Made by a program: the position numbers and the translations under genes | The notes under the pieces: model-generated | Seen by the model: the letters and a program-made list of their open reading frames with translations, nothing else | Told to the model about the DNA's origin: nothing | Database searches by the model: none | Part shown: positions 1 through 27,000 of the stretch, piece after piece | Layout of the letters: the number at the start of each line of letters is the position of its first letter | How positions within the stretch are numbered: the stretch's first letter is position 1 | Assembly (NCBI GenBank): GCA_002269645.1 | Contig: NIVC01000296.1 | Coordinates: 558,001-622,000 of the forward strand | Direction of reading: 5' to 3' | DNA: 64,000 nt | DNA from: Macrostomum lignano | Lineage: Eukaryota

Positions 1-82
1 GCTCAACTGGCGAGTCGAAGTTGGCACCGTTGGCAGCGGAGACTGCGGCGAGGACGGAGCAGCCGAGGACGCCTGTCGAAAG
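1..82 (+). CDS. ap2 copy A exon 1 (partial), start of divergent vWD1
   Basis: ...[25 protein letters not shown] then GT donor at 83; reverse complement of 53261-53342. Confidence 0.8.
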
Positions 83-3000: not shown

Positions 3001-6000
3001 AACCCCCTGCTTCTGAGAAAATTCTGAATTAAATTACAGTTAGTTCAGACCCATTTTAAATTGATTTGAGCAATCTGTGACCCAGCCTGCAGAGAATTGT
3101 CAGTAGGATCAGAATGTGCATCGAATAAAAATGCGTACGTTGGATTAAACCGGTGGCAAGGAAGATTTAAGTAGACTTAAGTACCTAAGTCGCCTCTGAA
3201 AGATAAGAGTTAAATTATGAAAATTGGAAAGCATTTAAAAATTTGCTGCTGCTACGCTTTCAATAACGAGTATGTTTACATTTTACACCACAATCAGCCG
3301 GACGATTCGAAGATCCCCCTAGCGGTGAAGTTCAGCCGAAGCAGTCCAGCTCGCCTGGAGGTGTCCTGGCAGGGCCAGCAAGTCCTGGTGTACCATCGGC
3401 CTGCCACCGACAGCGAATCTGGCGACTTTGTCATCCAGCTGGGAGATCGCAGCCAGAAGCTGTGAGTAGCATTGAGTACGAGACAACTCTCGCTTCATAC
3501 TTCGTGGGTTCGATTCCTCTCTCGCTCACGCAGTCCGCTCATAATGCGTACATTCCCGATCATGAGAGAGCGAATGGAAACTTCACAAACTATAAATTTT
3601 ATTTTGTAGAAACTGCTTGCTTGAGACACGTTTGGGGCTTTTGGTAGCCACGAGTATTTAATCCACTCCGAGAAATTCAAGGTTGCTGTGAACTGTATGT
3701 GAGCTCCCGTCGTGACAGATAAAATAGGAAAGAAGTGACTCCAGCCGACTCTAAAGCGACGAGATGTCGCGCTACATGTTGCCAAAAAGTCGTCAAAAAG
3801 TCACCCAAGAATCACTTTGAAGCGTTGTAATGTATGCGGCTATAAAAAACGAATATGGGGCGACTCTAGTGATTGTGGGAGCCGTAGAGTCGTATTTGAG
3901 GCGTGCTAGAGTCCCTGCAGTCACTGGGTTGTGTTTGAAGCACTAACTAGCCTACTGAGTTAGTAGAAAGTTCAGCGCCAGCTTAACGATTCTTGGACGA
4001 CTCTTTCGCGACTCTTTACGATTCTGCAACTGACGTGATACGTTTGTGTCGCTAAAGTCGCCTCTTCATCGCATTAGACGCGTTTGAGTCGTTCAAAAGT
4101 CACAAGAATCGCCACAGAGTCACTGAAGAGTAGTTTGCAGCGAATTTTTTTCACGATTCTTGTCATGGTATCGTTTTCAACGGGATTGTAAATTTACGAC
4201 AATATCGTCAATAAGCTCTTGCTGGTTCTTGTTTAGTAGCAACCTATTTACTTGGACTTATTTTCAGAGCCATCGGAGAGCACCTTCGTGTCGGCCTCGG
4301 CTTCTTTCTGCATCGCGTCACCAGCCACTATATCCGGCTGCGCGTTGCCGATCTGCTGCGCGTTGACTTCAACGGTGGTACAGTCGAGCTGGCGGCCAGC
4401 AGGCGCCTCCGCGGAGCCCGTCGCCTGCGCGGCCTCTGCGGTCGCTACGACGGCTCGAGCGAGAACGATTTGTGGCCGAGGCGGGGCCGCGCTGCTGCCG
4501 ATTCCCTGTCCGTTGCTCGCTCCTATCTGGTGAAGGCCATCTCGCCGGCTGGTGGACCCAAACGGACGACCATCTCGCGGGAGGCTGTGCGCACATGCTA
4601 CGACCTGTTCCAGCACAGCGGCCAGTTTCAACGATGCGCCAGGACTGAGAATCTGCAGCCGTTCCTGCGCAACTGCGAGGCGGCTGGAGACCGAGACAGC
4701 GTCTGCTACATCGCATTCAATGCCATGCGACTGTGCGCCAGGTCCGGCTACAAGATCCACTGGCGACTGCTGCCGCAGCTCAGGAACTGCGGTGAGAGCC
4801 TTCAGCGATACAAAAACTAAACTTGAACAGTAGAGTGCCTCCTGTAGTGACTAATCCCAGTTGTACAGTAGAGAGCCCCAATCGCTGCATATACTCCCAG
4901 TTGTACAGCAGAGAGCCTCAGTCGCTGCATACTCCCAGTTGTACAGTAGAGAGCCTCAGTCACTGCATACTCCCAGTTGTACAGTAGAGAGCCTCAACCG
5001 CTGCATACTCCCAGTTGTACAGTAGAGAGCCTCAGTCGCTGCATACTCCCAGTTGTACAGTAGAGAGCCTCAGTCACTGCATACTCCCAGTTGTACAGTA
5101 GAGAGCCTCAGTCACTGCATGCTCCCAGTTGTACGAGCTACAGTAGAGAGCCTCAATCGCTGCATACTCCCAGTTGTACAGTAGAGAGCCTCAATCGCTG
5201 CATACTCCCAGTTGTACAGTAGAGAGCCTCAACCGCTGCATACTCCCAGTTATACAAGTAGAGAGCCTCAACCGCTGCATACTCCCAGTTATACAAGTAG
5301 AGAGCCTCAATCGCTGCATACTCCCAGTCGCTCACCAATCCTTGACTTCCGCTTGCAGCCCTGCTCGCCTGCCCCAGAGGCGGCTCCAGTTTTCGACTGT
5401 GCGCCAACACCTGCCAAGCGACCTGCGCTAGCTTAGCCCGGCCTGACCGCTGTCCCAGCGGCTGCTACTTCGGCTGCCAGTGTCCGCGCGGCCGCTACCT
5501 GATGGCTGACGGCCGGTGCGTCACCAAGTCCCAATGCACCTGCTTTGACTCGGCGACTGGAAGGCAGCGCCAGCCTGGAGAGAAATTTTCCAGGAGAAAC
5601 GAGAACTGGTGGGTGATATGTTTTTTTTTAAATGCTGGATTGCATGACTGAATTGATGATTTTTCGTAAAATCCAGAGGGAGGAAATCCCAGATAGAAAT
5701 CTGATATTTCCAGATTTGGAAGGAAATTTACTTAGAAAATTCTAGAAGAAAAATTCCACAGTGGATATCAGATTTTGGAGGGAAAATCTTGAATGGAAAA
5801 TTCAGAACGGGAAATCCCAGAAAAGGAAATCCCAGAGGGAAAATCCATAAAGGGAAATCCCAGAAGGAAAACCCAAAAAAGTAAATCCCAGAAGGAAAAC
5901 CCAAAAAAGTAAATCCCAGAAGGAAAATCCAGAAAGGGAAATTCCAGAAGAAAAATCCAGAGAGGGAAATCCCAGAAAGGGAAGTCCAAAAAGGAAAGTT

Positions 6001-9000
6001 CCAGAAATGGGAAATCCCAGAGCAAAGACTAGCAATATTAAGCCAACCCTACTTCCAGCAAATGCCAAGACGGTCGCGCCGTCTGTCAAGCTGCACAGTC
6101 AGCCTCGGCAGATGGCAGAGTCGCCTGCCCGAAGAATCAGGTCTGGCGACGCGCCCAGCCCGGCGAGTGCTGGCCGCGCCGCTGCGAGGATCCAGTCAAA
6201 GATGGCAGCCGGTGCCAATCGCCAGACAGCGCAGCAGAGGAGCGGTGCCGCTGCCCCGCCGGTCTGTTCGCCACCGATTCGGTGAGTCAGGGATGGACTT
6301 TTTAATTATCAAGCCAAAGAGTGAGGGGTAGAAGTACTAGGAGGGGTAGAAGGACTAGGAGGGGTAGAAGGACTAGGAGGGGTAGAAGGACTAGGAGGGG
6401 TAGAAGGACTAGGAGGGGTAGAAGGACTAGGAGGGGTAGAAGGACTAGGAGGGGTAGAAGGACTAGGAGGGGTAGAAGGACTAGGAGGGGTAGAAGGACT
6501 AGGAGGGGTAGAAGGACTAGGAGGGGTAGAAGGACTAGGAGGGGTAGAAGGACTAGGAGGGGTAGAAGGACTAGGAGGGGTAGAAGGACTAGGAGGGGTA
6601 GAAGGACTAGGAGGGGTAGAAGGACTAGGAGGGGTAGAAGGACTAGGAGGGGTAGAAGGACTAGGAGGGGTAGAAGGACTAGGAGGGGTAGAAGGACTAG
6701 GAGGGGTAGAAGGACTAGGAGGGGTAGAAGGACTAGGAGGGGTAGAAGGACTAGGAGGGGTAAAAAGACTCTCAGTCCTCACGCTCGTAGAAAGCATTTT
6801 TAAGAGGGTTAGTATCTCTTCCAAACTCTAGCGTATATTTCGCGCAAACCCTGCCCCAAAACGTAGGAGCTTAGCTGAGAGAAGAGAGCGGGCAGAGAAT
6901 TTTAAAATTTTCTACCTCCTATGTACATTCAAACAGACGCTAGTCATCAACCCCTTCCCCTCCACATGAACTTAGGAAAAATCGATTTTTTTAAAAACCC
7001 CAACCACCTGCCTCCCGCCGCCAGGGCCTGTGCGTCAACCGGTCAGACTGCCCATGCCGCTACGGCGGCCGCGAGCTCCTGACCGGATCAGTGCTGACCG
7101 CCCAGTGTCCCGGCCGCGTCTGCTCCAGCGGGCGCTGGTTGAACCGCGCCGCCTCTGAGAGCTCCTCGGACTCCGGCTGCCGCGGCCGCTGTCGGGCATT
7201 CGGCGACGGCTACTACGTCAGCTTCGACGGTCGGGCGTTTCGTTACTACGCCGGCTCTCTGGAGACGCTGCTGCTGCAGCTGCCGCAGCTTCGCGTGGCC
7301 ACGCGCAGCGTCGCCTGCGGCAGCAGCCGGCCGTCCGTCTGCGCCCGCCTGGTGAAAATCCGGCTGGCTGGCGGCGACGAGATCCGCGTTCTGCAGGGCA
7401 GGATTATCGCCGGCCTGCGTCACGTCGACGGCGAGGCTGTCGTGCTGACGGCCACCGCGGCGCTCGGCGGTTTGCACTTTCTGCGAATCGGCGTGTCGAT
7501 CGTGTGGGACAGAGGTGAAACCGTCTGCTGTCTTCGGATTCATTTTGGAGGGGGTCTTTTGGAGGGGTTCACTCCAAAACCATTTTTATTAGATGGGGGC
7601 TGTGTGCACCCTGGCGCACTTTAAGCGACATTGTCACACAATCGGCGAGAGGCATTACTGCCCATTCTGCCCGACTCCCCTGAGCAGGCACACAAGCGCG
7701 CGGATACGTACGCAGTCATACGCACAGACACAGGCACAGGCACAGGCACAGGATTGTACAGCGGCCCTAACTTTATTTATCGTTAGGCATGTACACTTCA
7801 CTGTGCCTTGGGGGTTGGGCCTCAAGGCCGTTAATTGCACGAGCAGAGCCAAGCCAAGGCAGATCTGCCATTGTCCAACTCCAAAACCAGAGACACAATC
7901 TGCCATTGTCCAACTCCAAAACCAGAGACACAATCTGCCATTGTCCAACTCCAAAACCAGAGACACAATCTGCCATTGTCCAACTCCAAAACCAGAGACA
8001 CAATCTGCCATTGTCCAACTCCAAAACCAGAGACACAATCTGCCATTGTCCAACTCCAAAACCAGAGACACAATCTGCCATTAAGGCACTCTGAAAAGGC
8101 ACACAGACACAATAGACATTGTCACTTACTTAGACAAATTCCCATTCGTTTTCAGGCACCCGACTGACAATCAACGCCGCCCGCCCCCGTAGCGGCCAGC
8201 CAATCGGCGGCCTCTGCGGCAACTTCAACGGCGACGCCACTGACGATTATCGAACGCCTGGCGGCCTGCTGGCGCTTAGCCCGGACGAATTCGGACGCAG
8301 TTGGACGCTGGAGAGCGACTACGCCCAGCCAATACCCGAGTCCGAGTACGACCAGGGCTGCCTAAAGGTTGGGAGCGATTCTGTTGTTCATTTCAGCCTG
8401 ACGAATTTCTATTGGTATATTTATGGACACACTGTAGAGCACTGGCTGTAAACACACTGTAGACCACTGGCTGTAGACACACTGTAGACCGCTGGCTGTA
8501 GACACACTGTAGACCACTGGCTGTAAACACACTGTAGACCGCTGGCTGTAAACACACTGTAGACCGCTGGCTGTAGACACACTGTAGACCGCTGGCTGTA
8601 GACACACTGTAGACCGCTGGCTGTAAACACACTGTAGACCGCTGGCTGTAAACACACTGTAGACCGCTGGCTGTAGACACACTGTAGACCACTGGCTGTA
8701 GACACACTATAGACCACTGGCTGTAGACACACTGTAGACCACTGGCTGTAGACACACTATAGACCACCGGCTGTAAACACACTGTAGACCACTGGCTGTA
8801 GACACACTGTAGACCACTGGCTGTAGACACACTGTAGACCACTGGCTGTAGACACACTATAGACCACCGGCTGTAGACACACTGTAGACCACCGGCTGTA
8901 GACACACTGTAGACCACTGGCTGTAGACACACTGTAGACCACTGGCTGTAGACACACTGTAGACCACCGGCTGTAGACACACTGTAGACCACCGGCTGTA

Positions 9001-12000
9001 GACACAGTGTTACAGCCCCATCCCACACTCCCAATCCCCACTCAGAGCCGAGAAAACTTTGACTGGTCCTTCGCCCGATGCGGCCTACTTCGAGACCAGA
9101 GAGGCCCCTTCGGCCGCTGCCTGTCGGTGCTGAACGAGGACCGGCTGGAGTTCCTGCACGACGCTTGCCTGCGCGAGGCCTGCCGATGTCGTCGAACTGT
9201 CAAAGATGCCGCTAACTGCGACGGCCTGTGCAACCTGATGGCCGCCGCGGCAGACGAATGCGCTGGACTCAACGTCACCGTGGACTGGCGGTCCGCGGCC
9301 TTCTGCCGTGAGTCACGGGGAGCACAGCTTCACGAAACTGTTAAAAGATTGAGTCACTCCCTTCTCCAACATTATCACAAATTGAGTCACTTTCTACTCC
9401 AATACTGTCACAAATTGAGTCACTTCCTACTCCAATATTGTCACAAATTGAGTCACTCCCTACTCCAATCCTGTCACAAATTGAGTCCCTACTTCAACAC
9501 TGTCACAAATTGAGTCACTCCCTACTCCAATCCTGTCACAAATTGAGTCCCTACTTCAACACTGTCACAAATTGAGTCACTCCCTATTCCAATCCTGTCA
9601 CAAATTGAGTCACTGCTACACACAATCTTTAGAATATAGTGACCTACCCATACGCAGTTTTGAATTTGAGTAACATCACAAACACACAGTCACAATTTCA
9701 GTCACATCTTGGGTTTTGTATACAATAAGGCAATAAAATTATTTGAAATTTCTTCTCTTCAATCCCGAACGCAGCGTACAATTGTCCCGAGGGCACCGCC
9801 TACACCAGCTGCGGCCAGCTCCAAAGCCCATTTGTCTTCGCTAACGGACCCGACGTGCAGTGCCTGGAAGGTGAGAAAAAAGAGTTCGCTTTGAGTCTCT
9901 GAGCAGCTCAGCGGTTAGCATCAGACTGCTCACAAGGGCCGGCCAATCCCTGAGCCTGTGTACATGCCTGAAAATGGTAGATTGTCAAGGACAAGTGACT
10001 TCAGTGGTCCTTGTAGATTGTATAGAATTTTTACCCAACACACCGGCCATTTTAACACACTTAAATTTGATTTGATTGGACCAGAGATGGGGTGGGTGAA
10101 CTGCTTGGCTTATCAGATTATCAGATAAGATAATAGGCGAGTCTATAAATGAGTCATAAAATTTTAATTAGTATACCTTTTCAACAACGGATTCGTCAAA
10201 AGTGAGTTCAAATTCGTCAGCGTATGCAAAACTATATAGCGCTCAAGGGGAAGAGAATGAGTGTCTATGGTAAATTTAAGTAAGAAAGTGAGTGAAGTTC
10301 GTCTGTGGAAAAGTAGCCCGATTTCTTGAAATCTTCATTTCATGCTTTTATGCTTTGATGCTTTGAAAAGCTTGTTGCAGATTTTCCTGCTGCTCCTGCT
10401 GTGACAACGCAGGCAAGCAGTCGTCGGCGTGACGGGACTTTGTGCGTTACATTGGCTGTTTGTTGTCATGTAGGGCATCTCTGACAACAATCAAAGCATG
10501 AAATGAAGATTTCAAGAAATCGGGCTACTTTTCCACAGACGAACTTCACTCACTTTCTTACTTAAATTTACCATAGACACATTCTTTTCTTACCATGAAT
10601 AAAGCAAACACTTTTTCTGATCAGGCTGTATTTGCACTGACGAATTTCACTTACTTAGACAAATTCGAAGTCACTTTCTCTAAAAATTTACCATAGACAC
10701 TCATTCTCTTCCCCTTGAGCGCTATATAGTTTTGCATACCCTGACGAATTTGAACTCACTTTTGACGAATCCGTTGTTGAAAAGGTATATTATAAAATTA
10801 GTATGCCTGCTCTTATCAATTTGAAAAATCTGCCGGTGGAGTCGCTGAATGGTGTAACAATGCCCGCTTTGACTTGTAAAATTGTGTCTGGGTAAAAGTT
10901 CTTTACAATGATAAACTCTAACTAGGCTGTTTTACCGTTTCACTGCAGACTGCCGATGCCGCATGGGTGGCCAGTGGACCCAGGCCGCCGGCAGCTGCAC
11001 CGAGGCCAGCCATGTGTGCCGCTACAGAGCCGCCGTTTATCAGACTGGCGACTCAGCCAAACTTGGCTGCCGTCAGTGGTGAGCTAAGCTTTGAGTTCAT
11101 TGCGAAATTCTCAAGTATACGCATTCTGTTTAACAGAATATTAAATGCCAAATTAAATTATTTTATCTACTCGTTCATCAAGCACCTGTCGAGAAGGCAA
11201 ATGGATTCGATGCGACAACAAGGATTGTTATAGAAACACAACAATTGAGCTGAACAATTTGAGCACAGTTGGTAAGTCAAATTGAATGTTAGTTATTTGT
11301 AAAGCCTCATAGTACCTATTTAGAGAGTGAGCTATTGTATTGAATTGTCTATGGTAGAGAGTGAGCTATCGAATTGTCTATGATAGAGAGTGAGCTATCG
11401 AATTGTCTATGGTAGAGAGTGAGCTATTGAATTGTCTATGGTAGAGAGTGAGCTATTGAATTGTCTATGGTAGAGAGTGAGCTTTTGAATTGTCTATGGT
11501 AGAGAGTGAGCTATTGAATTGTCTATGGTAGAGAGTGAGCTATTGAATTGTCTATGGTACAGAGTGAGCTACTGAATTGTCTATGGTAGAGAGTAGACCT
11601 TGAGTGTCTATGGTTGAGAGTGAGCTATTGAATTGTCTATGGTAGAGAGTGAGCTATTGAATTGTCTATGGTAGAGAGTGAGCTATCGAATTGTCTATGG
11701 TAGAGAGTGAGCTATTGAATTGTCTATGGTAGAGAGTGAGCTTTTGAATTGTCTATGGTACAGAGTGAGCTTTTGAATTGTCTATGGTAGAGAGTGAGCT
11801 ATTGAATTGTCTATGGTAGAGAGTGAGCTATTGAATTGTCTATGGTACAGAGTGAGCTACTGAATTGTCTATGGTAGAGAGTAGACCTTGAGTGTCTATG
11901 GTTGAGAGTGAGCTATTGAATTGTCTATGGTAGAGAGTGAGCTATTGAATTGTCTATGGTAGAGAGTGAGCTATTGAATTGTCTATGGTAGAGAGTGAGC

Positions 12001-15000
12001 TATTGAATTGTCTATGGTAGAGAGTGAGCTACTGAATTGTCTATGGTAGAGAGTGAGCTATTGAATTGTCTATGGTAGAGAGTGAGCTATTGAATTGTCT
12101 ATGGTAGAGAGTAACCCTTGAGTGTCTATGGTTGAGAGTGAGCTATTGAATTGTCTATGGTAGAGAGTGAGCTACTGAATTGTCTATGGTAGAGAGTAGA
12201 CCTTGAGTGTCTATGATTGAGAGGATGGTTGCGAGTTTGAGTTGATTGATAGGGAGCACAATCATTATCAATGTTTATATTATAGATCTATTGATAATAA
12301 TGCGTGGGCGTATCCTTTCAGCGCCATGCACTGGACATTCGTTTGCTTGCCGAAATTCGGACGCCTGCCTGCACAGATCGAAGGTGTGCGATGGAGTCCC
12401 CGACTGTAGCGATGGTTCGGACGAGATGTCCTGCGGTAGGCTCTGCGATTAGTATCTTTACTATTTTTAGAAACCAAAAAATAACCCTGGTATTATTTGA
12501 ATCACCCAATTTGCAGAGGGCTGTCCCGCATTCAAGCTGAAGTGCCGCCGGTCCAATCTGTGTATTGCCAAGTCGGAGGTCTGCGATGGCAAGCACCAGT
12601 GCCGCCTGGGCAACTCTACGGACGATTCGGACGAAGAGAACTGCGCAACCGGCGCTACAACAAGCGCGCCTCAGAAGAAGCCCATTGAAGGCACTGACAG
12701 CTGCTATCGGCCTCTGCTTCAGTCTGGACTAATCAAGGAGAGTCAGGTAAGAATTACTGAGAACTTTGCGCCAACTCACGGCTACAGACGGGCCGAACTG
12801 CTGGACTCGCGTAAGCGGCCGTATTTGCTTAGCAAAGGCAGAACAGTGTTCGAGTTGCGACTCTCGCCAGCCGGCTCCGCTGTCCGCGTCAGCTCAGTGC
12901 TGCTGCAAATCCAGTCCAACCATCGTAGAGGACTGAAGGCGATTCGCTTGTACGCCAACTCCAACAAGACCTGGCAGCTTCTGGAGGCAAAGGAGAGCAA
13001 CATAGCCTGCACCCGCTGTCTTATTAAGCTCAACAAGCTACCATTCGCCGCTGAAAAGCTGAAGTTCAAAATCCAATCAAGGAGCTCGATGAAGATCCAA
13101 TTGGAAATAAATGGTTGTCCAGGCCAAAATCTGGAATCGGGAAGGTGCCGCAGACTTCCAGCCACTGCCTGCAATGTGAAGGTGTACAAGAGCATTACCT
13201 ACAACAGAGAGTATTCGGGAGAGGAAAAAAGTCGTTTGGTTTTGCCACGGACGGAGTACTCACTGCTCAAGCAGGGATCGAGTGAAATCGTCATTGGAGT
13301 CCCAGAAATGGTGCGAATCTGTGCAGTAATTATCAAGAGCAAACTGCCAAGCGATGGCAAGCCAACCGCTAATGTGGTTTCGTTTGTGTACGACAAGAAA
13401 CTGAGCGAATTGACTCTTGTTTCTAAGCTTCCAATTAGTACAAACACGACAACAATTACGATCAGCAAACCAACAAACGAGTATAAGGCCGTGCTGTACT
13501 CAAAAGATCCAATTAGAATATCAATTGAAATCCAGGTTAAAAAGCAACCAGTTACAAAGAACGAACCGAAGCAGCAGAAAATTGCTTGCAAAGGCTCCTT
13601 GCCGGACTCTGAAGTTAGTGGCAAAGTTCGAGTTCTAAGAATGACAGCGCTGGATTCACGTCAGGAATACACACAATCGGATCGAAGACAGCTTCTGCGC
13701 AAGGGCGCCGCGCTGAGTTCAGGAAGAACGGACGTACTTGTGCAGTTTAGTCTAAAGCAAACTGACGTCATTGAGGCGCTTCAAGTACTGACAACCACTC
13801 CAGGAGCCGACGCGAAAGTTACCGCTAGAGAACTGCAGCTTTGCACTCGAGACCGATGCTCAAAGGTCAAAATGTCTACACCATCAGTCCAACAAACCAA
13901 CATGGTCATTCGCGCGCGAGCCAGGTTTTTGAAAATCATTCTTGATTCTCCAACTAGCCGCTATGCAAAAAATGCAAAGCTGAAGTTTGACTTTTGTAGC
14001 AGGAATAAGCCGCACGTCTGCAAGGAAAGATACCTGGAGCGCTGCAATGTGCCACTAATGAAGAGCATTACATTTGGAAAGCGATATGACGCGTACACGG
14101 TAAAAGCACTGCTGCAAGGCCGGCCAGTAAGACTGCTCAGAGGATATACAAAAATTACACTCATCAATTTAAACCTTGCTGAGTCAGTAATATTAAAAAA
14201 AACCGGTGGTAGAAGACCTCTAAAACTAATAATTTCGCTCACCACTACTAATGAAAGGAAACGAAAAACTACGATAACAAAATTTGACACTGTCTACAGC
14301 GCCAAGCTTCCAACCGGCTACACAAAAATGATCATCACGATAAAATCAAAAGAACCGTCTAAACTAGCACTCTTTAAAAAGGAATGCCAAAAACCCAACA
14401 AAATACCCAACCGAGAGCCAAAAACCGCTGCACACACAACCACTATCGCACCTGCAACGACAACACTCGAACCGACAAAACGGCCAACAACGGCGAGCAC
14501 TGCGGCCGCAAAGACAACCAAGGCCCCTGTGCTGACTACAACCACCAAGCGACGACGAGTGTGCAAGAAGAAGATGGCGTTCGACAGTAACGTGCTTCGT
14601 CCTGAGGATGTTGTGGAGGTGAAGCGCGTGCCGCAGAATGAGCCCTACGACGAGCCAGAGAAGAAGTCGCTGCTTCCAGGTAGACGCGGCCTGCCACTCA
14701 GAAAGGGTGACACGCTGGTCCGCATTGACCTGAGCAGGCTGCCGGAGGGAAGCCGGGTCGCCGAGATCAAGGTGAGCGCCGACAAGCCGAAGCGAATCAC
14801 AAAGGTGTCTGTGACAGAAGTGACCAACAACGAGAGAACTCCGGTTGGCAAGGCTGAACAGCCAGGCGACGAGCCGTTGAGTCGCGACGACCTGGAATCG
14901 ATCCCACTGACGCCGACCAGACGAACTCCCGACCTGATCGAGGTGCGAATCAGAAGAGGCTCCAAGCGACCGTCAGGGTGACGCTGGAGGTCAAGGTGTG

Positions 15001-18000
15001 TCTCAAGAAGAAGCCGGCGACTACAACAACGCAGAGTACTACGACATCGGCAACGACAACGAGAAGACCGAGCACTGCCGGATTGACAACAGAAACAACG
15101 CGCACTACACGGGGCACACCGGCCGGCGAAAAGGTGACCTTCCCGATGCCGTCCATCACGAGCAGGAAATCGACCGGTAGAACTACGCGCCAGAAGAAGT
15201 CGACAACAACGGCTGGCAGATCGACAACGAGCACGTCGACGAAACGGCCAACGACGGCGAGCACTGCGGCCGCAAAGACAACCAAGGCCCCTGTGCTGAC
15301 TACAACCACCAAGCGACGACGAGTGTGCAAGAAGAAGATGGCGTTCGACAGTAACGTGCTTCGTCCTGAGGATGTTGTGGAGGTGAAGCGCGTGCCGCAG
15401 AATGAGCCCTACGACGAGCCAGAGAAGAAGTCGCTGCTTCCAGGTAGACGCGGCCTGCCACTCAGAAAGGGTGACACGCTGGTCCGCATTGACCTGAGCA
15501 GGCTGCCGGAGGGAAGCCGGGTCGCCGAGATCAAGGTGAGCGCCGACAAGCCGAAGCGAATCACAAAGGTGTCTGTGACAGAAGTGACCAACAACGAGAG
15601 AACTCCGGTTGGCAAGGCTGAACAGCCAGGCGACGAGCCGTTGAGTCGCGACGACCTGGAATCGATCCCACTGACGCCGACCAGACGAACTCCCGACCTG
15701 ATCGAGGTGCGAATCAGAAGAGGCTCCAAGCGACCGGTCAGGGTGACGCTGGAGGTCAAGGTGTGTCTCAAGAAGAAGCCGGCGACTACAACAACGCAGA
15801 GTACTACGACATCGGCAACGACAACGAGAAGACCGAGCACTGCCGGATTGACAACAGAAACAACGCGCACTACACGGGGCACACCGGCCGGCGAAAAGGT
15901 GACCTTCCCGATGCCGTCCATCACGAGCAGGAAATCGACCGGTAGAACTACGCGCCAGAAGAAGTCGACAACAACGGCTGGCAGATCGACAACGAGCACG
16001 TCGACGAAACGGCCAACGACGGCGAGCACTGCGGCCGCAAAGACAACCAAGGCCCCTGTGCTGACTACAACCACCAAGCGACGACGAGTGTGCAAGAAGA
16101 AGATGGCGTTCGACAGTAACGTGCTTCGTCCTGAGGATGTTGTGGAGGTGAAGCGCGTGCCGCAGAATGAGCCCTACGACGAGCCAGAGAAGAAGTCGCT
16201 GCTTCCAGGTAGACGCGGCCTGCCACTCAGAAAGGGTGACACGCTGGTCCGCATTGACCTGAGCAGGCTGCCGGAGGGAAGCCGGGTCGCCGAGATCAAG
16301 GTGAGCGCCGACAAGCCGAAGCGAATCACAAAGGTGTCTGTGACAGAAGTGACCAACAACGAGAGAACTCCGGTTGGCAAGGCTGAACAGCCAGGCGACG
16401 AGCCGTTGAGTCGCGACGACCTGGAATCGATCCCACTGACGCCGACCAGACGAACTCCCGACCTGATCGAGGTGCGAATCAGAAGAGGCTCCAAGCGACC
16501 GGTCAGGGTGACGCTGGAGGTCAAGGTGTGTCTCAAGAAGAAGCCGGCGACTACAACAACGCAGAGTACTACGACATCGGCAACGACAACGAGAAGACCG
16601 AGCACTGCCGGATTGACAACAGAAACAACGCGCACTACACGGGGCACACCGGCCGGCGAAAAGGTGACCTTCCCGATGCCGTCCATCACGAGCAGGAAAT
16701 CGACCGGTAGAACTACGCGCCAGAAGAAGTCGACAACAACGGCTGGCAGATCGACAACGAGCACGTCGACGAAACGGCCAACGACGGCGAGCACTGCGGC
16801 CGCAAAGACAACCAAGGCCCCTGTGCTGACTACAACCACCAAGCGACGACGAGTGTGCAAGAAGAAGATGGCGTTCGACAGTAACGTGCTTCGTCCTGAG
16901 GATGTTGTGGAGGTGAAGCGCGTGCCGCAGAATGAGCCCTACGACGAGCCAGAGAAGAAGTCGCTGCTTCCAGGTAGACGCGGCCTGCCACTCAGAAAGG
17001 GTGACACGCTGGTCCGCATTGACCTGAGCAGGCTGCCGGAGGGAAGCCGGGTCGCCGAGATCAAGGTGAGCGCCGACAAGCCGAAGCGAATCACAAAGGT
17101 GTCTGTGACAGAAGTGACCAACAACGAGAGAACTCCGGTTGGCAAGGCTGAACAGCCAGGCGACGAGCCGTTGAGTCGCGACGACCTGGAATCGATCCCA
17201 CTGACGCCGACCAGACGAACTCCCGACCTGATCGAGGTGCGAATCAGAAGAGGCTCCAAGCGACCGTCAGGGTGACGCTGGAGGTCAAGGTGTGTCTCAA
17301 GAAGAAGCCGGCGACTACAACAACGCAGAGTACTACGACATCGGCAACGACAACGAGAAGACCGAGCACTGCCGGATTGACAACAGAAACAACGCGCACT
17401 ACACGGGGCACACCGGCCGGCGAAAAGGTGACCTTCCCGATGCCGTCCATCACGAGCAGGAAATCGACCGGTAGAACTACGCGCCAGAAGAAGTCGACAA
17501 CAACGGCTGGCAGATCGACAACGAGCACGTCGACGAAACGGCCAACGACGGCGAGCACTGCGGCCGCAAAGACAACCAAGGCCCCTGTGCTGACTACAAC
17601 CACCAAGCGACGACGAGTGTGCAAGAAGAAGATGGCGTTCGACAGTAACGTGCTTCGTCCTGAGGATGTTGTGGAGGTGAAGCGCGTGCCGCAGAATGAG
17701 CCCTACGACGAGCCAGAGAAGAAGTCGCTGCTTCCAGGTAGACGCGGCCTGCCACTCAGAAAGGGTGACACGCTGGTCCGCATTGACCTGAGCAGGCTGC
17801 CGGAGGGAAGCCGGGTCGCCGAGATCAAGGTGAGCGCCGACAAGCCGAAGCGAATCACAAAGGTGTCTGTGACAGAAGTGACCAACAACGAGAGAACTCC
17901 GGTTGGCAAGGCTGAACAGCCAGGCGACGAGCCGTTGAGTCGCGACGACCTGGAATCGATCCCACTGACGCCGACCAGACGAACTCCCGACCTGATCGAG

Positions 18001-21000
18001 GTGCGAATCAGAAGAGGCTCCAAGCGACCGTCAGGGTGACGCTGGAGGTCAAGGTGTGTCTCAAGAAGAAGCCGGCGACTACAACAACGCAGAGTACTAC
18101 GACATCGGCAACGACAACGAGAAGACCGAGCACTGCCGGATTGACAACAGAAACAACGCGCACTACACGGGGCACACCGGCCGGCGAAAAGGTGACCTTC
18201 CCGATGCCGTCCATCACGAGCAGGAAATCGACCGGTAGAACTACGCGCCAGAAGAAGTCGACAACAACGGCTGGCAGATCGACAACGAGCACGTCGACGA
18301 AACGGCCAACGACGGCGAGCACTGCGGCCGCAAAGACAACCAAGGCCCCTGTGCTGACTACAACCACCAAGCGACGACGAGTGTGCAAGAAGAAGATGGC
18401 GTTCGACAGTAACGTGCTTCGTCCTGAGGATGTTGTGGAGGTGAAGCGCGTGCCGCAGAATGAGCCCTACGACGAGCCAGAGAAGAAGTCGCTGCTTCCA
18501 GGTAGACGCGGCCTGCCACTCAGAAAGGGTGACACGCTGGTCCGCATTGACCTGAGCAGGCTGCCGGAGGGAAGCCGGGTCGCCGAGATCAAGGTGAGCG
18601 CCGACAAGCCGAAGCGAATCACAAAGGTGTCTGTGACAGAAGTGACCAACAACGAGAGAACTCCGGTTGGCAAGGCTGAACAGCCAGGCGACGAGCCGTT
18701 GAGTCGCGACGACCTGGAATCGATCCCACTGACGCCGACCAGACGAACTCCCGACCTGATCGAGGTGCGAATCAGAAGAGGCTCCAAGCGACCGTCAGGG
18801 TGACGCTGGAGGTCAAGGTGTGTCTCAAGAAGAAGCCGGCGACTACAACAACGCAGAGTACTACGACATCGGCAACGACAACGAGAAGACCGAGCACTGC
18901 CGGATTGACAACAGAAACAACGCGCACTACACGGGGCACACCGGCCGGCGAAAAGGTGACCTTCCCGATGCCGTCCATCACGAGCAGGAAATCGACCGGT
19001 AGAACTACGCGCCAGAAGAAGTCGACAACAACGGCTGGCAGATCGACAACGAGCACGTCGACGAAACGGCCAACGACGGCGAGCACTGCGGCCGCAAAGA
19101 CAACCAAGGCCCCTGTGCTGACTACAACCACCAAGCGACGACGAGTGTGCAAGAAGAAGATGGCGTTCGACAGTAACGTGCTTCGTCCTGAGGATGTTGT
19201 GGAGGTGAAGCGCGTGCCGCAGAATGAGCCCTACGACGAGCCAGAGAAGAAGTCGCTGCTTCCAGGTAGACGCGGCCTGCCACTCAGAAAGGGTGACACG
19301 CTGGTCCGCATTGACCTGAGCAGGCTGCCGGAGGGAAGCCGGGTCGCCGAGATCAAGGTGAGCGCCGACAAGCCGAAGCGAATCACAAAGGTGTCTGTGA
19401 CAGAAGTGACCAACAACGAGAGAACTCCGGTTGGCAAGGCTGAACAGCCAGGCGACGAGCCGTTGAGTCGCGACGACCTGGAATCGATCCCACTGACGCC
19501 GACCAGACGAACTCCCGACCTGATCGAGGTGCGAATCAGAAGAGGCTCCAAGCGACCGTCAGGGTGACGCTGGAGGTCAAGGTGTGTCTCAAGAAGAAGC
19601 CGGCGACTACAACAACGCAGAGTACTACGACATCGGCAACGACAACGAGAAGACCGAGCACTGCCGGATTGACAACAGAAACAACGCGCACTACACGGGG
19701 CACACCGGCCGGCGAAAAGGTGACCTTCCCGATGCCGTCCATCACGAGCAGGAAATCGACCGGTAGAACTACGCGCCAGAAGAAGTCGACAACAACGGCT
19801 GGCAGATCGACAACGAGCACGTCGACGAAACGGCCAACGACGGCGAGCACTGCGGCCGCAAAGACAACCAAGGCCCCTGTGCTGACTACAACCACCAAGC
19901 GACGACGAGTGTGCAAGAAGAAGATGGCGTTCGACAGTAACGTGCTTCGTCCTGAGGATGTTGTGGAGGTGAAGCGCGTGCCGCAGAATGAGCCCTACGA
20001 CGAGCCAGAGAAGAAGTCGCTGCTTCCAGGTAGACGCGGCCTGCCACTCAGAAAGGGTGACACGCTGGTCCGCATTGACCTGAGCAGGCTGCCGGAGGGA
20101 AGCCGGGTCGCCGAGATCAAGGTGAGCGCCGACAAGCCGAAGCGAATCACAAAGGTGTCTGTGACAGAAGTGACCAACAACGAGAGAACTCCGGTTGGCA
20201 AGGCTGAACAGCCAGGCGACGAGCCGTTGAGTCGCGACGACCTGGAATCGATCCCACTGACGCCGACCAGACGAACTCCCGACCTGATCGAGGTGCGAAT
20301 CAGAAGAGGCTCCAAGCGACCGTCAGGGTGACGCTGGAGGTCAAGGTGTGTCTCAAGAAGAAGCCGGCGACTACAACAACGCAGAGTACTACGACATCGG
20401 CAACGACAACGAGAAGACCGAGCACTGCCGGATTGACAACAGAAACAACGCGCACTACACGGGGCACACCGGCCGGCGAAAAGGTGACCTTCCCGATGCC
20501 GTCCATCACGAGCAGGAAATCGACCGGTAGAACTACGCGCCAGAAGAAGTCGACAACAACGGCTGGCAGATCGACAACGAGCACGTCGACGAAACGGCCA
20601 ACGACGGCGAGCACTGCGGCCGCAAAGACAACCAAGGCCCCTGTGCTGACTACAACCACCAAGCGACGACGAGTGTGCAAGAAGAAGATGGCGTTCGACA
20701 GTAACGTGCTTCGTCCTGAGGATGTTGTGGAGGTGAAGCGCGTGCCGCAGAATGAGCCCTACGACGAGCCAGAGAAGAAGTCGCTGCTTCCAGGTAGACG
20801 CGGCCTGCCACTCAGAAAGGGTGACACGCTGGTCCGCATTGACCTGAGCAGGCTGCCGGAGGGAAGCCGGGTCGCCGAGATCAAGGTGAGCGCCGACAAG
20901 CCGAAGCGAATCACAAAGGTGTCTGTGACAGAAGTGACCAACAACGAGAGAACTCCGGTTGGCAAGGCTGAACAGCCAGGCGACGAGCCGTTGAGTCGCG

Positions 21001-24000
21001 ACGACCTGGAATCGATCCCACTGACGCCGACCAGACGAACTCCCGACCTGATCGAGGTGCGAATCAGAAGAGGCTCCAAGCGACCGTCAGGGTGACGCTG
21101 GAGGTCAAGGTGTGTCTCAAGAAGAAGCCGGCGACTACAACAACGCAGAGTACTACGACATCGGCAACGACAACGAGAAGACCGAGCACTGCCGGATTGA
21201 CAACAGAAACAACGCGCACTACACGGGGCACACCGGCCGGCGAAAAGGTGACCTTCCCGATGCCGTCCATCACGAGCAGGAAATCGACCGGTAGAACTAC
21301 GCGCCAGAAGAAGTCGACAACAACGGCTGGCAGATCGACAACGAGCACGTCGACGAAACGGCCAACGACGGCGAGCACTGCGGCCGCAAAGACAACCAAG
21401 GCCCCTGTGCTGACTACAACCACCAAGCGACGACGAGTGTGCAAGAAGAAGATGGCGTTCGACAGTAACGTGCTTCGTCCTGAGGATGTTGTGGAGGTGA
21501 AGCGCGTGCCGCAGAATGAGCCCTACGACGAGCCAGAGAAGAAGTCGCTGCTTCCAGGTAGACGCGGCCTGCCACTCAGAAAGGGTGACACGCTGGTCCG
21601 CATTGACCTGAGCAGGCTGCCGGAGGGAAGCCGGGTCGCCGAGATCAAGGTGAGCGCCGACAAGCCGAAGCGAATCACAAAGGTGTCTGTGACAGAAGTG
21701 ACCAACAACGAGAGAACTCCGGTTGGCAAGGCTGAACAGCCAGGCGACGAGCCGTTGAGTCGCGACGACCTGGAATCGATCCCACTGACGCCGACCAGAC
21801 GAACTCCCGACCTGATCGAGGTGCGAATCAGAAGAGGCTCCAAGCGACCGTCAGGGTGACGCTGGAGGTCAAGGTGTGTCTCAAGAAGAAGCCGGCGACT
21901 ACAACAACGCAGAGTACTACGACATCGGCAACGACAACGAGAAGACCGAGCACTGCCGGATTGACAACAGAAACAACGCGCACTACACGGGGCACACCGG
22001 CCGGCGAAAAGGTGACCTTCCCGATGCCGTCCATCACGAGCAGGAAATCGACCGGTAGAACTACGCGCCAGAAGAAGTCGACAACAACGGCTGGCAGATC
22101 GACAACGAGCACGTCGACGAAACGGCCAACGACGGCGAGCACTGCGGCCGCAAAGACAACCAAGGCCCCTGTGCTGACTACAACCACCAAGCGACGACGA
22201 GTGTGCAAGAAGAAGATGGCGTTCGACAGTAACGTGCTTCGTCCTGAGGATGTTGTGGAGGTGAAGCGCGTGCCGCAGAATGAGCCCTACGACGAGCCAG
22301 AGAAGAAGTCGCTGCTTCCAGGTAGACGCGGCCTGCCACTCAGAAAGGGTGACACGCTGGTCCGCATTGACCTGAGCAGGCTGCCGGAGGGAAGCCGGGT
22401 CGCCGAGATCAAGGTGAGCGCCGACAAGCCGAAGCGAATCACAAAGGTGTCTGTGACAGAAGTGACCAACAACGAGAGAACTCCGGTTGGCAAGGCTGAA
22501 CAGCCAGGCGACGAGCCGTTGAGTCGCGACGACCTGGAATCGATCCCACTGACGCCGACCAGACGAACTCCCGACCTGATCGAGGTGCGAATCAGAAGAG
22601 GCTCCAAGCGACCGTCAGGGTGACGCTGGAGGTCAAGGTGTGTCTCAAGAAGAAGCCGGCGACTACAACAACGCAGAGTACTACGACATCGGCAACGACA
22701 ACGAGAAGACCGAGCACTGCCGGATTGACAACAGAAACAACGCGCACTACACGGGGCACACCGGCCGGCGAAAAGGTGACCTTCCCGATGCCGTCCATCA
22801 CGAGCAGGAAATCGACCGGTAGAACTACGCGCCAGAAGAAGTCGACAACAACGGCTGGCAGATCGACAACGAGCACGTCGACGAAACGGCCAACGACGGC
22901 GAGCACTGCGGCCGCAAAGACAACCAAGGCCCCTGTGCTGACTACAACCACCAAGCGACGACGAGTGTGCAAGAAGAAGATGGCGTTCGACAGTAACGTG
23001 CTTCGTCCTGAGGATGTTGTGGAGGTGAAGCGCGTGCCGCAGAATGAGCCCTACGACGAGCCAGAGAAGAAGTCGCTGCTTCCAGGTAGACGCGGCCTGC
23101 CACTCAGAAAGGGTGACACGCTGGTCCGCATTGACCTGAGCAGGCTGCCGGAGGGAAGCCGGGTCGCCGAGATCAAGGTGAGCGCCGACAAGCCGAAGCG
23201 AATCACAAAGGTGTCTGTGACAGAAGTGACCAACAACGAGAGAACTCCGGTTGGCAAGGCTGAACAGCCAGGCGACGAGCCGTTGAGTCGCGACGACCTG
23301 GAATCGATCCCACTGACGCCGACCAGACGAACTCCCGACCTGATCGAGGTGCGAATCAGAAGAGGCTCCAAGCGACCCGTCAGGGTGACGCTGGAGGTCA
23401 AGGTGTGTCTCAAGAAGAAGCCGGCGACTACAACAACGCAGAGTACTACGACATCGGCAACGACAACGAGAAGACCGAGCACTGCCGGATTGACAACAGA
23501 AACAACGCGCACTACACGGGGCACACCGGCCGGCGAAAAGGTGACCTTCCCGATGCCGTCCATCACGAGCAGGAAATCGACCGGTAGAACTACGCGCCAG
23601 AAGAAGTCGACAACAACGGCTGGCAGATCGACAACGAGCACGTCGACGAAACGGCCAACGACGGCGAGCACTGCGGCCGCAAAGACAACCAAGGCCCCTG
23701 TGCTGACTACAACCACCAAGCGACGACGAGTGTGCAAGAAGAAGATGGCGTTCGACAGTAACGTGCTTCGTCCTGAGGATGTTGTGGAGGTGAAGCGCGT
23801 GCCGCAGAATGAGCCCTACGACGAGCCAGAGAAGAAGTCGCTGCTTCCAGGTAGACGCGGCCTGCCACTCAGAAAGGGTGACACGCTGGTCCGCATTGAC
23901 CTGAGCAGGCTGCCGGAGGGAAGCCGGGTCGCCGAGATCAAGGTGAGCGCCGACAAGCCGAAGCGAATCACAAAGGTGTCTGTGACAGAAGTGACCAACA

Positions 24001-27000
24001 ACGAGAGAACTCCGGTTGGCAAGGCTGAACAGCCAGGCGACGAGCCGTTGAGTCGCGACGACCTGGAATCGATCCCACTGACGCCGACCAGACGAACTCC
24101 CGACCTGATCGAGGTGCGAATCAGAAGAGGCTCCAAGCGACCGTCAGGGTGACGCTGGAGGTCAAGGTGTGTCTCAAGAAGAAGCCGGCGACTACAACAA
24201 CGCAGAGTACTACGACATCGGCAACGACAACGAGAAGACCGAGCACTGCCGGATTGACAACAGAAACAACGCGCACTACACGGGGCACACCGGCCGGCGA
24301 AAAGGTGACCTTCCCGATGCCGTCCATCACGAGCAGGAAATCGACCGGTAGAACTACGCGCCAGAAGAAGTCGACAACAACGGCTGGCAGATCGACAACG
24401 AGCACGTCGACGAAACGGCCAACGACGGCGAGCACTGCGGCCGCAAAGACAACCAAGGCCCCTGTGCTGACTACAACCACCAAGCGACGACGAGTGTGCA
24501 AGAAGAAGATGGCGTTCGACAGTAACGTGCTTCGTCCTGAGGATGTTGTGGAGGTGAAGCGCGTGCCGCAGAATGAGCCCTACGACGAGCCAGAGAAGAA
24601 GTCGCTGCTTCCAGGTAGACGCGGCCTGCCACTCAGAAAGGGTGACACGCTGGTCCGCATTGACCTGAGCAGGCTGCCGGAGGGAAGCCGGGTCGCCGAG
24701 ATCAAGGTGAGCGCCGACAAGCCGAAGCGAATCACAAAGGTGTCTGTGACAGAAGTGACCAACAACGAGAGAACTCCGGTTGGCAAGGCTGAACAGCCAG
24801 GCGACGAGCCGTTGAGTCGCGACGACCTGGAATCGATCCCACTGACGCCGACCAGACGAACTCCCGACCTGATCGAGGTGCGAATCAGAAGAGGCTCCAA
24901 GCGACCCGTCAGGGTGACGCTGGAGGTCAAGGTGTGTCTCAAGAAGAAGCCGGCGACTACAACAACGCAGAGTACTACGACATCGGCAACGACAACGAGA
25001 AGACCGAGCACTGCCGGATTGACAACAGAAACAACGCGCACTACACGGGGCACACCGGCCGGCGAAAAGGTGACCTTCCCGATGCCGTCCATCACGAGCA
25101 GGAAATCGACCGGTAGAACTACGCGCCAGAAGAAGTCGACAACAACGGCTGGCAGATCGACAACGAGCACGTCGACGAAACGGCCAACGACGGCGAGCAC
25201 TGCGGCCGCAAAGACAACCAAGGCCCCTGTGCTGACTACAACCACCAAGCGACGACGAGTGTGCAAGAAGAAGATGGCGTTCGACAGTAACGTGCTTCGT
25301 CCTGAGGATGTTGTGGAGGTGAAGCGCGTGCCGCAGAATGAGCCCTACGACGAGCCAGAGAAGAAGTCGCTGCTTCCAGGTAGACGCGGCCTGCCACTCA
25401 GAAAGGGTGACACGCTGGTCCGCATTGACCTGAGCAGGCTGCCGGAGGGAAGCCGGGTCGCCGAGATCAAGGTGAGCGCCGACAAGCCGAAGCGAATCAC
25501 AAAGGTGTCTGTGACAGAAGTGACCAACAACGAGAGAACTCCGGTTGGCAAGGCTGAACAGCCAGGCGACGAGCCGTTGAGTCGCGACGACCTGGAATCG
25601 ATCCCACTGACGCCGACCAGACGAACTCCCGACCTGATCGAGGTGCGAATCAGAAGAGGCTCCAAGCGACCCGTCAGGGTGACGCTGGAGGTCAAGGTGT
25701 GTCTCAAGAAGAAGCCGGCGACTACAACAACGCAGAGTACTACGACATCGGCAACGACAACGAGAAGACGAGCACTGCCGGATTGACAACAGAAACAACG
25801 CGCACTACACGGGGCACACCGGCCGGCGAAAAGGTGACCTTCCCGATGCCGTCCATCACGAGCAGGAAATCGACCGGTAGAACTACGCGCCAGAAGAAGT
25901 CGACAACAACGGCTGGCAGATCGACAACGAGCACGTCGACGAAACGGCCAACGACGGCGAGCACTGCGGCCGCAAAGACAACCAAGGCCCCTGTGCTGAC
26001 TACAACCACCAAGCGACGACGAGTGTGCAAGAAGAAGATGGCGTTCGACAGTAACGTGCTTCGTCCTGAGGATGTTGTGGAGGTGAAGCGCGTGCCGCAG
26101 AATGAGCCCTACGACGAGCCAGAGAAGAAGTCGCTGCTTCCAGGTAGACGCGGCCTGCCACTCAGAAAGGGTGACACGCTGGTCCGCATTGACCTGAGCA
26201 GGCTGCCGGAGGGAAGCCGGGTCGCCGAGATCAAGGTGAGCGCCGACAAGCCGAAGCGAATCACAAAGGTGTCTGTGACAGAAGTGACCAACAACGAGAG
26301 AACTCCGGTTGGCAAGGCTGAACAGCCAGGCGACGAGCCGTTGAGTCGCGACGACCTGGAATCGATCCCACTGACGCCGACCAGACGAACTCCCGACCTG
26401 ATCGAGGTGCGAATCAGAAGAGGCTCCAAGCGACCGTCAGGGTGACGCTGGAGGTCAAGGTGTGTCTCAAGAAGAAGCCGGCGACTACAACAACGCAGAG
26501 TACTACGACATCGGCAACGACAACGAGAAGACCGAGCACTGCCGGATTGACAACAGAAACAACGCGCACTACACGGGGCACACCGGCCGGCGAAAAGGTG
26601 ACCTTCCCGATGCCGTCCATCACGAGCAGGAAATCGACCGGTAGAACTACGCGCCAGAAGAAGTCGACAACAACGGCTGGCAGATCGACAACGAGCACGT
26701 CGACGAAACGGCCAACGACGGCGAGCACTGCGGCCGCAAAGACAACCAAGGCCCCTGTGCTGACTACAACCACCAAGCGACGACGAGTGTGCAAGAAGAA
26801 GATGGCGTTCGACAGTAACGTGCTTCGTCCTGAGGATGTTGTGGAGGTGAAGCGCGTGCCGCAGAATGAGCCCTACGACGAGCCAGAGAAGAAGTCGCTG
26901 CTTCCAGGTAGACGCGGCCTGCCACTCAGAAAGGGTGACACGCTGGTCCGCATTGACCTGAGCAGGCTGCCGGAGGGAAGCCGGGTCGCCGAGATCAAGG

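Follow-up and report, generated by a model that had tools for sequence, protein, structure and literature searches.

Predicted jelly-roll beads on cationic, threonine-rich spacers in the repeat array of the Macrostomum lignano adhesive protein Mlig-ap2

A stretch of 64,000 nucleotides from the genome of the flatworm Macrostomum lignano (assembly GCA_002269645.1, contig NIVC01000296.1, positions 558,001 to 622,000 of the forward strand) was analyzed and is called the window throughout. The tandem array which starts in it is 'repeat 1' (RP-1) of Mlig-ap2, the surface-binding glue protein of this species, and the whole protein is a one-to-one alternation of about 50 beads and tethers, with a VWD/C8/TIL head and a TSP1/TIL tail. 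We consider it likely that the beads are jelly-roll domains, each closed by a clasp disulfide, that the tethers are glycosylated cationic spacers, and that the protein holds to a surface by the sum of many weak contacts. The gene, the repeat, the glycosylation and the role in adhesion are already published. What is new is the division of the repeat into a bead and a spacer, the homology which ties RP-1 to RP-2 and, more weakly, to the modules upstream, and a fold prediction for the bead; the advance is one of structural interpretation and not the discovery of a new system.

Gene identity and composition of the repeat unit

Mlig-ap2 (GenBank MH586845; Wunderer et al. 2019, PMC6410801) is a secreted protein of 14,794 amino acids (aa). 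It has 21 repeats of 255 aa and 25 repeats of 221 aa (PMC6410801), and the repeats make up nearly three-quarters of the protein. Its published sequence is partly Sanger-verified and reads through the repeat array. In later work (Pjeta et al. 2021, PMC8621496) the repeats were named RP-1, or 'Repeat A', and RP-2, and were described as 'requiring more attention'. The published accounts keep RP-1 as an undissected unit, in contrast to the Cys-bounded domain and Thr-rich spacer into which it is divided here, and a full-text literature search found no paper giving a fold or an internal architecture to the Mlig-ap2 repeats.

That the published RP-1 and the repeat of the window are one sequence is seen from their shared peptide strings, period of 255 aa and antibody epitope and from the N-terminal VWD/TIL/LDLa context. 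The supplement of PMC6410801 prints the string KKKMAFDS 16 times and the string VTLEVKVC 6 times, and long flanks of these strings and the upstream non-repeat residues also match the window; the supplement text is the product of optical character recognition with small errors, so the identity is near-exact rather than established residue by residue. The epitope of the antibody AP2_R2 is located in the RP-1 spacer (15158-15199); the + strand of the window holds 17 copies of it and the - strand 13, and it has 21 occurrences in the published protein (PMC6410801). The gene model P0001 (2,093 aa) is 100% identical over a query of 717 aa, which consisted of the non-repeat part and the first RP-1 domain, and its exons map from window position 2 to 12700 when P0001 is searched against the window by tblastn. 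A signal peptide is present in P0001 along with Pfam matches to VWD (7.9e-21), LDLa (3.5e-10) and TIL (6.1e-9). The gene of the window carries a signal peptide, VWD, TIL, C8 and LDLa before the repeats and so matches the published N-terminal architecture of Mlig-ap2. The UniRef match to a profile of six domain modules, which are described below, names Macrostomum lignano as well.

On the + strand, positions 12501-27929 form a single long coding stretch in which a non-repeated part is followed by the tandem array. The unit of 765 bp codes for 255 aa, and window positions 14978-15742, in the VTLEVKVC register, were taken as the reference unit. Cys occurs at positions 8 and 117 of the unit only. 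The segment running from Cys to Cys is 147 aa long and has a net charge of +8, one Tyr, one Phe and no Trp; charged residues account for 56 of its 147 positions, with 15 Pro and 24 Asp/Glu, and the acidic residues are clustered at residues 15-33 and 99-112. The linker of 108 aa holds 39 Thr, 11 Ser, 7 Pro, 11 Lys, 12 Arg and 2 Glu and no Asp (net charge +21), and 95 of its residues (88%) are Thr, Ser, Pro, Ala, Gly, Lys or Arg.

A preliminary description of this DNA had already divided the 255-aa unit into a Cys-bounded segment of 147 aa and a linker of 108 aa, for which it gave 39 Thr and 11 Ser together with 23 Lys/Arg and just 2 Glu. On re-translation these counts proved exact, and the two Cys per unit and the single Tyr, counted in the Cys-to-Cys segment, were confirmed. 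The span which it gave, 14562-15765, starts correctly and ends one base short of 15766, because copy 1 has a deletion of one nucleotide (1 nt) near position 14971. The repeat was thus described correctly, while the earlier publication of the gene and repeat and the frame break inside the span were both overlooked.

There are 17 unit starts on the + strand, from 14978 to 27205, at a spacing of 765, 764 or 763 bp, and about 14 units on the - strand, from 39006 down to 29089. The copies are identical apart from a handful of sites. In 14 of the 16 complete + strand units the coding frame is free of stops (the other two frames have 8-12 stops), and the last two complete units on this strand are broken by extra 1-nt deletions. 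The coordinates of all the features are collected in Table 1.

Table 1. Features of the Mlig-ap2 locus, in window coordinates, with the basis of each assignment
Feature	Positions	Strand	Basis
Upstream exons of copy A (VWD, TIL, C8-like, LDLa), introns full of minisatellites	2..12700	+	tblastn of P0001, Pfam, tandem repeats
M0: degenerate copy, 139 aa, CYRPLL...QLEINGC	12702..13118	+	Open frame from 12501, matches P0001; Cys at both ends, same strand pattern
M1: degenerate copy, 133 aa, 3 Cys, without C-terminal Cys	13146..13544	+	Shuffle z 4.9 vs RP-1; alignment
M2: degenerate copy, 137 aa, CKGSLP...LKFDFC, two extra internal Cys	13587..13997	+	Shuffle z 6.1 vs RP-1; BLASTP
M3: degenerate copy, 115 aa, CNVPLM...LFKKEC	14043..14387	+	Shuffle z 5.3 vs RP-1; BLASTP
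First linker, short, 58 aa; last ~37 aa identical to RP-1 linker end	14388..14561	+	Translation
RP-1 folded domain (predicted), copy 1; 1-nt deletion ~14971 (GG to G) breaks the frame	14562..15001	+	Translation, unit comparison
RP-1 array, gene copy A: 16 full and 1 partial unit, running into the gap	14978..27929	+	Period analysis
RP-1 linker, 108 aa; presumed carrier of core-1 O-glycans	15002..15325	+	Composition; published pull-down with peanut agglutinin (PNA)
Hydrophobic island EKVTFPMPS in the RP-1 linker	15128..15154	+	Linker alignment
Anti-Mlig-ap2 AP2_R2 epitope	15158..15199	+	Epitope from PMC6410801 methods
RP-1 folded domain (predicted), copy 2, intact 147 aa, sequence modelled	15326..15766	+	AlphaFold2, Foldseek
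Run of 962 N (scaffold gap), centre of palindrome	27930..28891		Sequence
RP-1 array, gene copy B: ~14 units, more indels and fixed differences vs copy A	28892..39013	-	Period analysis, unit comparison

Predicted fold of the bead and its relatives

The 147-aa domain was modelled by AlphaFold2 (AF2), for which the alignment of the final run contained six paralogous sequences, namely RP-1, the upstream modules M0-M3 and the RP-2 domain taken from the gene model P0003. The model is a single compact and mostly beta domain, as had been proposed from the sequence, with a mean predicted local distance difference test (pLDDT) score of 89.2 and a predicted template modelling (pTM) score of 0.85. The pLDDT of the five models ranges from 82.7 to 89.2 and no residue falls below 50. 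About eight main strands are seen, at residues 17-23, 44-56, 66-73, 79-88, 91-99, 114-115, 125-132 and 138-146.

The model was compared with the structures of the PDB by Foldseek, and the best match was the DOC domain of HECTD3 (E 6.5e-4). Of the best 50 matches, 47 belong to or resemble the galactose-binding-domain-like class, at template modelling (TM) scores of about 0.5, which is at the same-fold threshold. Besides HECTD3 DOC the neighbours include CBM6, the CBM32 of NanJ (TMq 0.50, TMt 0.53, root mean square deviation (rmsd) 4.0 Å), the b1/b2 domains of neuropilin-1, SUN2, the furin P domain and PHM. The neuropilin-1 b1/b2 domains, which are of discoidin type, gave TMq 0.47-0.52 and E values of 5e-3 to 1e-2, and jelly rolls that are not discoidin score as well. 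The top matches of an earlier, low-confidence AF2 model come from the same fold class. It is probable, at moderate confidence, that the 147-aa segment is a compact beta-sandwich, a jelly roll of the galactose-binding-domain-like class. What these models allow to be assigned is a fold class and not a family, and the domain is not filed here as discoidin.

A likeness to discoidin/FA58C domains had also been proposed, and it holds for the fold class, with neuropilin b1/b2 among the neighbours, and not for the family, as none of the modules has a Pfam FA58C match. Like the discoidin/FA58C domains (C1/C2 of factors V and VIII, b1/b2 of neuropilin), the bead has about 150 aa and probably a jelly roll of eight strands; both have Cys at the first and last positions, and both end in a strand of alternating hydrophobic residues followed by Cys. 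The bead differs from them in having no sequence-profile match and in an rmsd of 6-7 Å, and DOC, CBM6, CBM32 and SUN match it equally or better. Its aromatic residues (1 Tyr, 1 Phe, 0 Trp) are also unlike typical discoidin spikes.

The first and last Cys of the domain probably form a clasp disulfide. Cys is kept at both ends in RP-2, M0, M2, M3 and the terminal RP-2 copy, and it is because this pair is kept in a secreted protein while the identity of the paralogues goes down to 18-28% that a disulfide is argued for. The bond is also plausible because the alignments to single-domain targets are near full-length and the termini of the galactose-binding-domain-like fold lie together.

The second repeat, RP-2, has a unit of 221 aa, which divides into a Cys-to-Cys segment of 155 aa and a Thr-rich spacer of 66 aa with 23 Thr, 4 Ser, 10 Pro and a net charge of +9. 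Over their full length the RP-1 and RP-2 domains can be aligned with the terminal Cys in register, at a local alignment score of 9.8 standard deviations above shuffles, and judged by this alignment they are homologous. P0003 (5,655 aa) is an RP-2 array, in which the RP-1 domain region was matched in 24 stretches by the exhaustive HMMER search described below. The last RP-2 copy, adjoining the TSP1 domains, has a divergent final strand and keeps its terminal Cys. In all, four or five degenerate copies come before the arrays. The modules M0-M3 resemble the RP-1 domain more weakly; for M0 the similarity is marginal (shuffle z 2.4), the BLASTP alignment of M2 begins in register at the N-terminal Cys and that of M3 closes in register on its C-terminal Cys. 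Both repeat types, together with M0-M3, would then be variations of one bead.

The only spacer part conserved between both repeats is the island EK[VL]TFPMPS, which reads EKVTFPMPS in RP-1 and EKLTFPMPS in RP-2. Processing or docking may take place at this island, or it may be a hinge free of glycans.

Relatives were searched for by several methods. The exhaustive HMMER search, in which the 717-aa query was compared with 1.84 billion representatives, gave only three proteins, all of them M. lignano pieces of Mlig-ap2. In the word-indexed homologue search the single RP-1 domain had 0 matches and the six-module profile had only two, both M. lignano fragments of Mlig-ap2. A phmmer search of the PDB sequences with the domain gave nothing meaningful, nor did a search of the PDB with the six-module profile, and a Pfam scan of the full unit and of the 717-aa upstream part gave sub-threshold chance matches only. 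No sequence relative outside M. lignano was found among 5.8 billion proteins. By its sequence, then, the bead appears to be an orphan jelly roll within a known fold class and a known protein.

The rule of two Cys per module is broken upstream of the array. M1 has three Cys and no C-terminal one, M2 has an extra pair in LQLCTRDRC, and the M0-M1 and M2-M3 junctions each hold a short connector with Cys. The extra Cys of M1, M2 and the connectors hint that, where the array starts, disulfides may join neighbouring modules or separate molecules.

Probable spacer glycosylation, adhesion and competing explanations

Mlig-ap2 is pulled down by PNA, which shows that it carries Gal-beta1,3-GalNAc, the mucin-type core-1 O-glycan (PMC6410801), and the epitope of PNA is by definition O-linked to Ser or Thr. 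Mucin-type O-glycosylation had been predicted from the sequence, and the published pull-down bears this out for the whole protein. The spacer holds 50 of the 68 Ser/Thr of the unit, and as a tandem stretch dominated by Thr, Ser and Pro and lacking the residues of a hydrophobic core it has the composition of a mucin-type proline/threonine/serine (PTS) region. The peptides listed in the published mass spectrometry tables of footprints and tails include two from the RP-1 domain and, from the RP-2 domain, KEALLPSGSGLPVK, EVTVFVADEDKPEK, GGSTQLTFQVDR and ALSPSQLENVEFPELPK. None of four predicted spacer peptides is among those listed in the searched parts of the published tables, and this absence fits a glycosylated spacer, although it is only suggestive. 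The Gal-beta1,3-GalNAc O-glycans are most likely carried by the spacer, at sites which would be its Ser and Thr residues.

RNA interference (RNAi) of Mlig-ap2 makes the worms fully non-adhesive, and no Mlig-ap1 is then found in the footprints (PMC6410801); the adhesive role which had been proposed from the sequence is therefore proven for Mlig-ap2. It is also published that the worms stick to glass, plastic, wood and metal and to anionic, cationic and hydrophobic monolayers, and that they do not stick to protein-resistant oligo-ethylene-glycol monolayers. According to the same body of published work, heparin and Fondaparinux strip Mlig-ap1, not Mlig-ap2, from the footprints; galactose, glucose and PNA are without effect on adhesion; and adhesion is likewise unaffected by salinity (2-60 ppt) and pH (4-10).

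In the mechanism which we propose, the glycosylated cationic spacers would keep the chain extended and hydrated and the beads apart from each other. The beads and the basic spacers would each make weak and chemically unspecific contacts, which may be charged, polar or hydrophobic, and their sum would give firm adsorption to almost any protein-adsorbing surface. The array of beads and spacers would also give Mlig-ap1 something to hold. Generic multivalent protein adsorption of this kind fits the published behaviour, because everything binds except the protein-resistant ethylene-glycol layers. Purely cationic binding is weakened, since cationic surfaces work and heparin leaves Mlig-ap2 in the footprints.

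Several points weigh against this picture and should be read along with it. The confident AF2 model was built from six paralogous sequences only, and the first AF2 run, which had RP-1 and M0-M3 without RP-2, reached a pLDDT of 53.5 and a pTM of 0.50. The Foldseek matches are borderline (TM 0.36-0.53, rmsd 4-7 Å) and include no close relative. A Pfam hmmscan of the six modules at E <= 10 found no FA58C or CBM and gave chance matches of E 0.08 or worse. M1 is without the C-terminal Cys of the supposed clasp. The absence of spacer peptides is weak evidence of glycosylation, as short hydrophilic peptides may be missed for technical reasons.

It is possible, though we hold it unlikely, that the bead serves chiefly for cohesion or docking, with its acidic patches or anionic glycan groups gripping the Lys/Arg-rich regions of Mlig-ap1 (a published example of these lysine/arginine (KR) peptides is SRKPRRKNRKSRKP), while it would be mainly the basic spacers, or other regions of Mlig-ap2, that touch the surface. 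This explanation overlaps with adsorption by summed weak contacts and the two are not exclusive. Docking of Mlig-ap1 by the bead would explain both its need for Mlig-ap2 and its displacement by heparin: Mlig-ap1 is missing from the footprints after Mlig-ap2 RNAi, its contact is competable by polyanions, as heparin and Fondaparinux remove it but not Mlig-ap2, and the acidic residues of the bead stand in two clusters. However, the published model puts the polycation contact of Mlig-ap1 at the microvillar glycocalyx and not on Mlig-ap2, and the domain is positive overall (net +8).

It is improbable that the bead works in the manner of a lectin, as a genuine discoidin or CBM domain with a defined glycan or lipid as its ligand (on surfaces coated with biofilm, for instance), and that the adhesion is multivalent and ligand-specific. 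The structural neighbours do include the sugar-binding CBM6 and CBM32 and the discoidin domains of neuropilin, the terminal Cys are placed as in FA58C, and echinoderm adhesives use tandem FA58C domains. Against this stand the lack of any Pfam FA58C or CBM match for the six modules, and lectin-type binding is further argued against because clean synthetic monolayers without glycans serve for attachment and because galactose and PNA, as also glucose, have no effect.

A further explanation, which we rate slightly lower again, is that the segment is not a stable autonomous domain and that its hydrophobic stretches pair between chains after secretion, so that the footprint cures by cross-beta or amyloid-like structure; the AF2 model would then be an over-confident artefact of its six-sequence alignment. 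The low confidence of the first AF2 run is in line with this, as are the 56 charged residues and 15 Pro among 147, and amyloid-like structures have been proposed in a review for marine adhesives with repetitive sequences. Yet the five final models agree with each other (pLDDT 82.7-89.2, pTM 0.85), the matches of both AF2 models come from one fold class, paralogues of only 22-28% identity keep the domain boundaries as well as the Cys pair, and the literature search gave no amyloid evidence for Macrostomum. Summed weak contacts of folded beads and charged spacers stay the explanation that we prefer.

In function the protein is nearest to Nectin of sea urchins, which has six FA58C domains in tandem, and to Sfp1 of sea stars, which also contains discoidin domains; both are secreted and glycosylated temporary adhesives. 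Nectin, Sfp1 and Mlig-ap2 have tandem jelly-roll beta-sandwich domains, which in Mlig-ap2 are predicted. The Nectin domains are recognisable as FA58C by sequence and abut each other, whereas the flatworm domain has no Pfam match, and the flatworm beads differ from Nectin in the long cationic Thr-rich spacers between them and in being present as about 50 repeats in near-identical copies.

The closest architectural analogue is found in the gel-forming mucins. MUC2, MUC5AC and MUC5B have a VWD-C8-TIL head, O-glycosylated PTS repeats broken up by small globular CysD domains with 10 Cys, and a VWC/CK C-terminus. Mlig-ap2 is like them in its VWD/C8/TIL N-terminus, in its huge Thr-rich, O-glycosylated centre with small disulfide-containing globular domains (both the glycosylation of this part and the disulfide being probable in Mlig-ap2), in its core-1 glycans and in its storage in secretory granules. 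It is unlike them in that its spacers are strongly cationic (net +21 per 108 aa) where those of the mucins are neutral, the bead is a predicted jelly roll with two Cys in place of the 10-Cys CysD, the beads and spacers alternate strictly 1:1, and the C-terminus is TSP1/TIL and not VWC/CK.

Among the temporary glues of animals, no surface-binding protein is better validated than Mlig-ap2. By the division proposed here an intractable protein of 14,794 aa is reduced to a domain of 147 aa which is expressible, solvable and testable on defined surfaces, the adhesives of flatworms and echinoderms would be linked at the level of the fold, and the whole protein is tied to the plan of the gel-forming mucins. 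More speculatively, and with no great expectation that it is so, the bead may found a Macrostomum-restricted jelly-roll family, of which about 50 members on cationic glycosylated tethers would act as a generic 'surface primer' that displaces interfacial water and adsorbs to any non-hydrated surface. If this were true, it would be a case of convergence with the tandem discoidin arrays of echinoderms, tandem jelly-roll beads would be a general design rule of reversible underwater glues, and the 147 aa would be an expressible unit for biomimetic work.

Frame breaks and arrangement of the window

The deletion near 14971 ends the literal open reading frame of copy 1 (KRPSG followed by a stop) and corresponds to unit position 759. 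Nearly all the 1-nt deletions of the + strand are at this same position, where the copies have G, C or no base. On the - strand the recurrent 1-nt deletions are at unit sites 52, 116 and 300, which in other copies hold A/G, A/G and G/A respectively. The frame breaks of the array are an artefact of consensus polishing over a collapsed repeat, and the true period is 765 bp and in frame. The artefact follows from the recurrent deletions coinciding with the sites that vary between the repeat copies, and the in-frame period from the published protein reading through the array and from the domain peptides seen by mass spectrometry. A non-coding satellite or a decayed pseudogene copy, which might be imagined because most units have 764 or 763 bp and their literal translation stops once per unit, has practically no chance of being the right explanation: of the 16 complete units on the + strand, 14 have a coding frame without stops, where the two alternative frames have 8-12; at the sites of recurrent deletion other copies carry substitutions; and a curated mRNA, an antibody, mass spectrometry peptides and RNAi are all published. 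The satellite or pseudogene reading of the 764-bp period was rejected on the variation at the deletion sites and on the stop-free units.

The polishing deletions truncate the public gene models; P0001 ends in ...KRPSG, and P0002 and P0003 carry out-of-frame stretches. In every unit open reading frames of 106, 126 or 228 aa are also present on the antisense strand (- strand, 14645-27900). These were rejected as genes, since the strand facing them is proven to be coding and its strong excess of A over T (AT skew about +0.4, GC 0.59) yields such frames as by-products.

Positions 1-53548 of the window form a large palindrome centred on the run of N at 27930-28891. It holds two copies of the 5' half of Mlig-ap2, placed tail to tail, copy A on the + strand from position 2 and copy B on the - strand from a start codon at 53548, and the RP-1 arrays of both copies converge on the gap of 962 N. 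The arms are not alike throughout: two positions of the unit, 138 (C>A) and 468 (T>C), show fixed differences, and the exons have 93-100% identity. Because the arms are non-identical, they are not a fold-back read but two alleles or two paralogues, which scaffolding has probably brought together.

Tandem repeats are found upstream of copy B and have no counterpart at the other side of the window. They consist of a 31-bp unit in 15.8 copies (55212-55703), a 14-bp unit in 36.6 copies (57277-57789), a degenerate 18-bp unit in 114 copies over 2 kb (60661-62735) and a 17-bp unit in 6.3 copies (63116-63221). The introns at 4823-12197, mirrored at 41789-48327, contain minisatellites with units of 38, 28, 18, 35, 25, 33 and 29 bp. 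Their copy number varies strongly between the two arms, with 29.9 copies at 4823-12197 vs 9.9 at 41789-48327 for the 29-bp unit, 23.4 vs 5.4 for the 25-bp unit and 8.3 vs 16.3 for the 33-bp unit.

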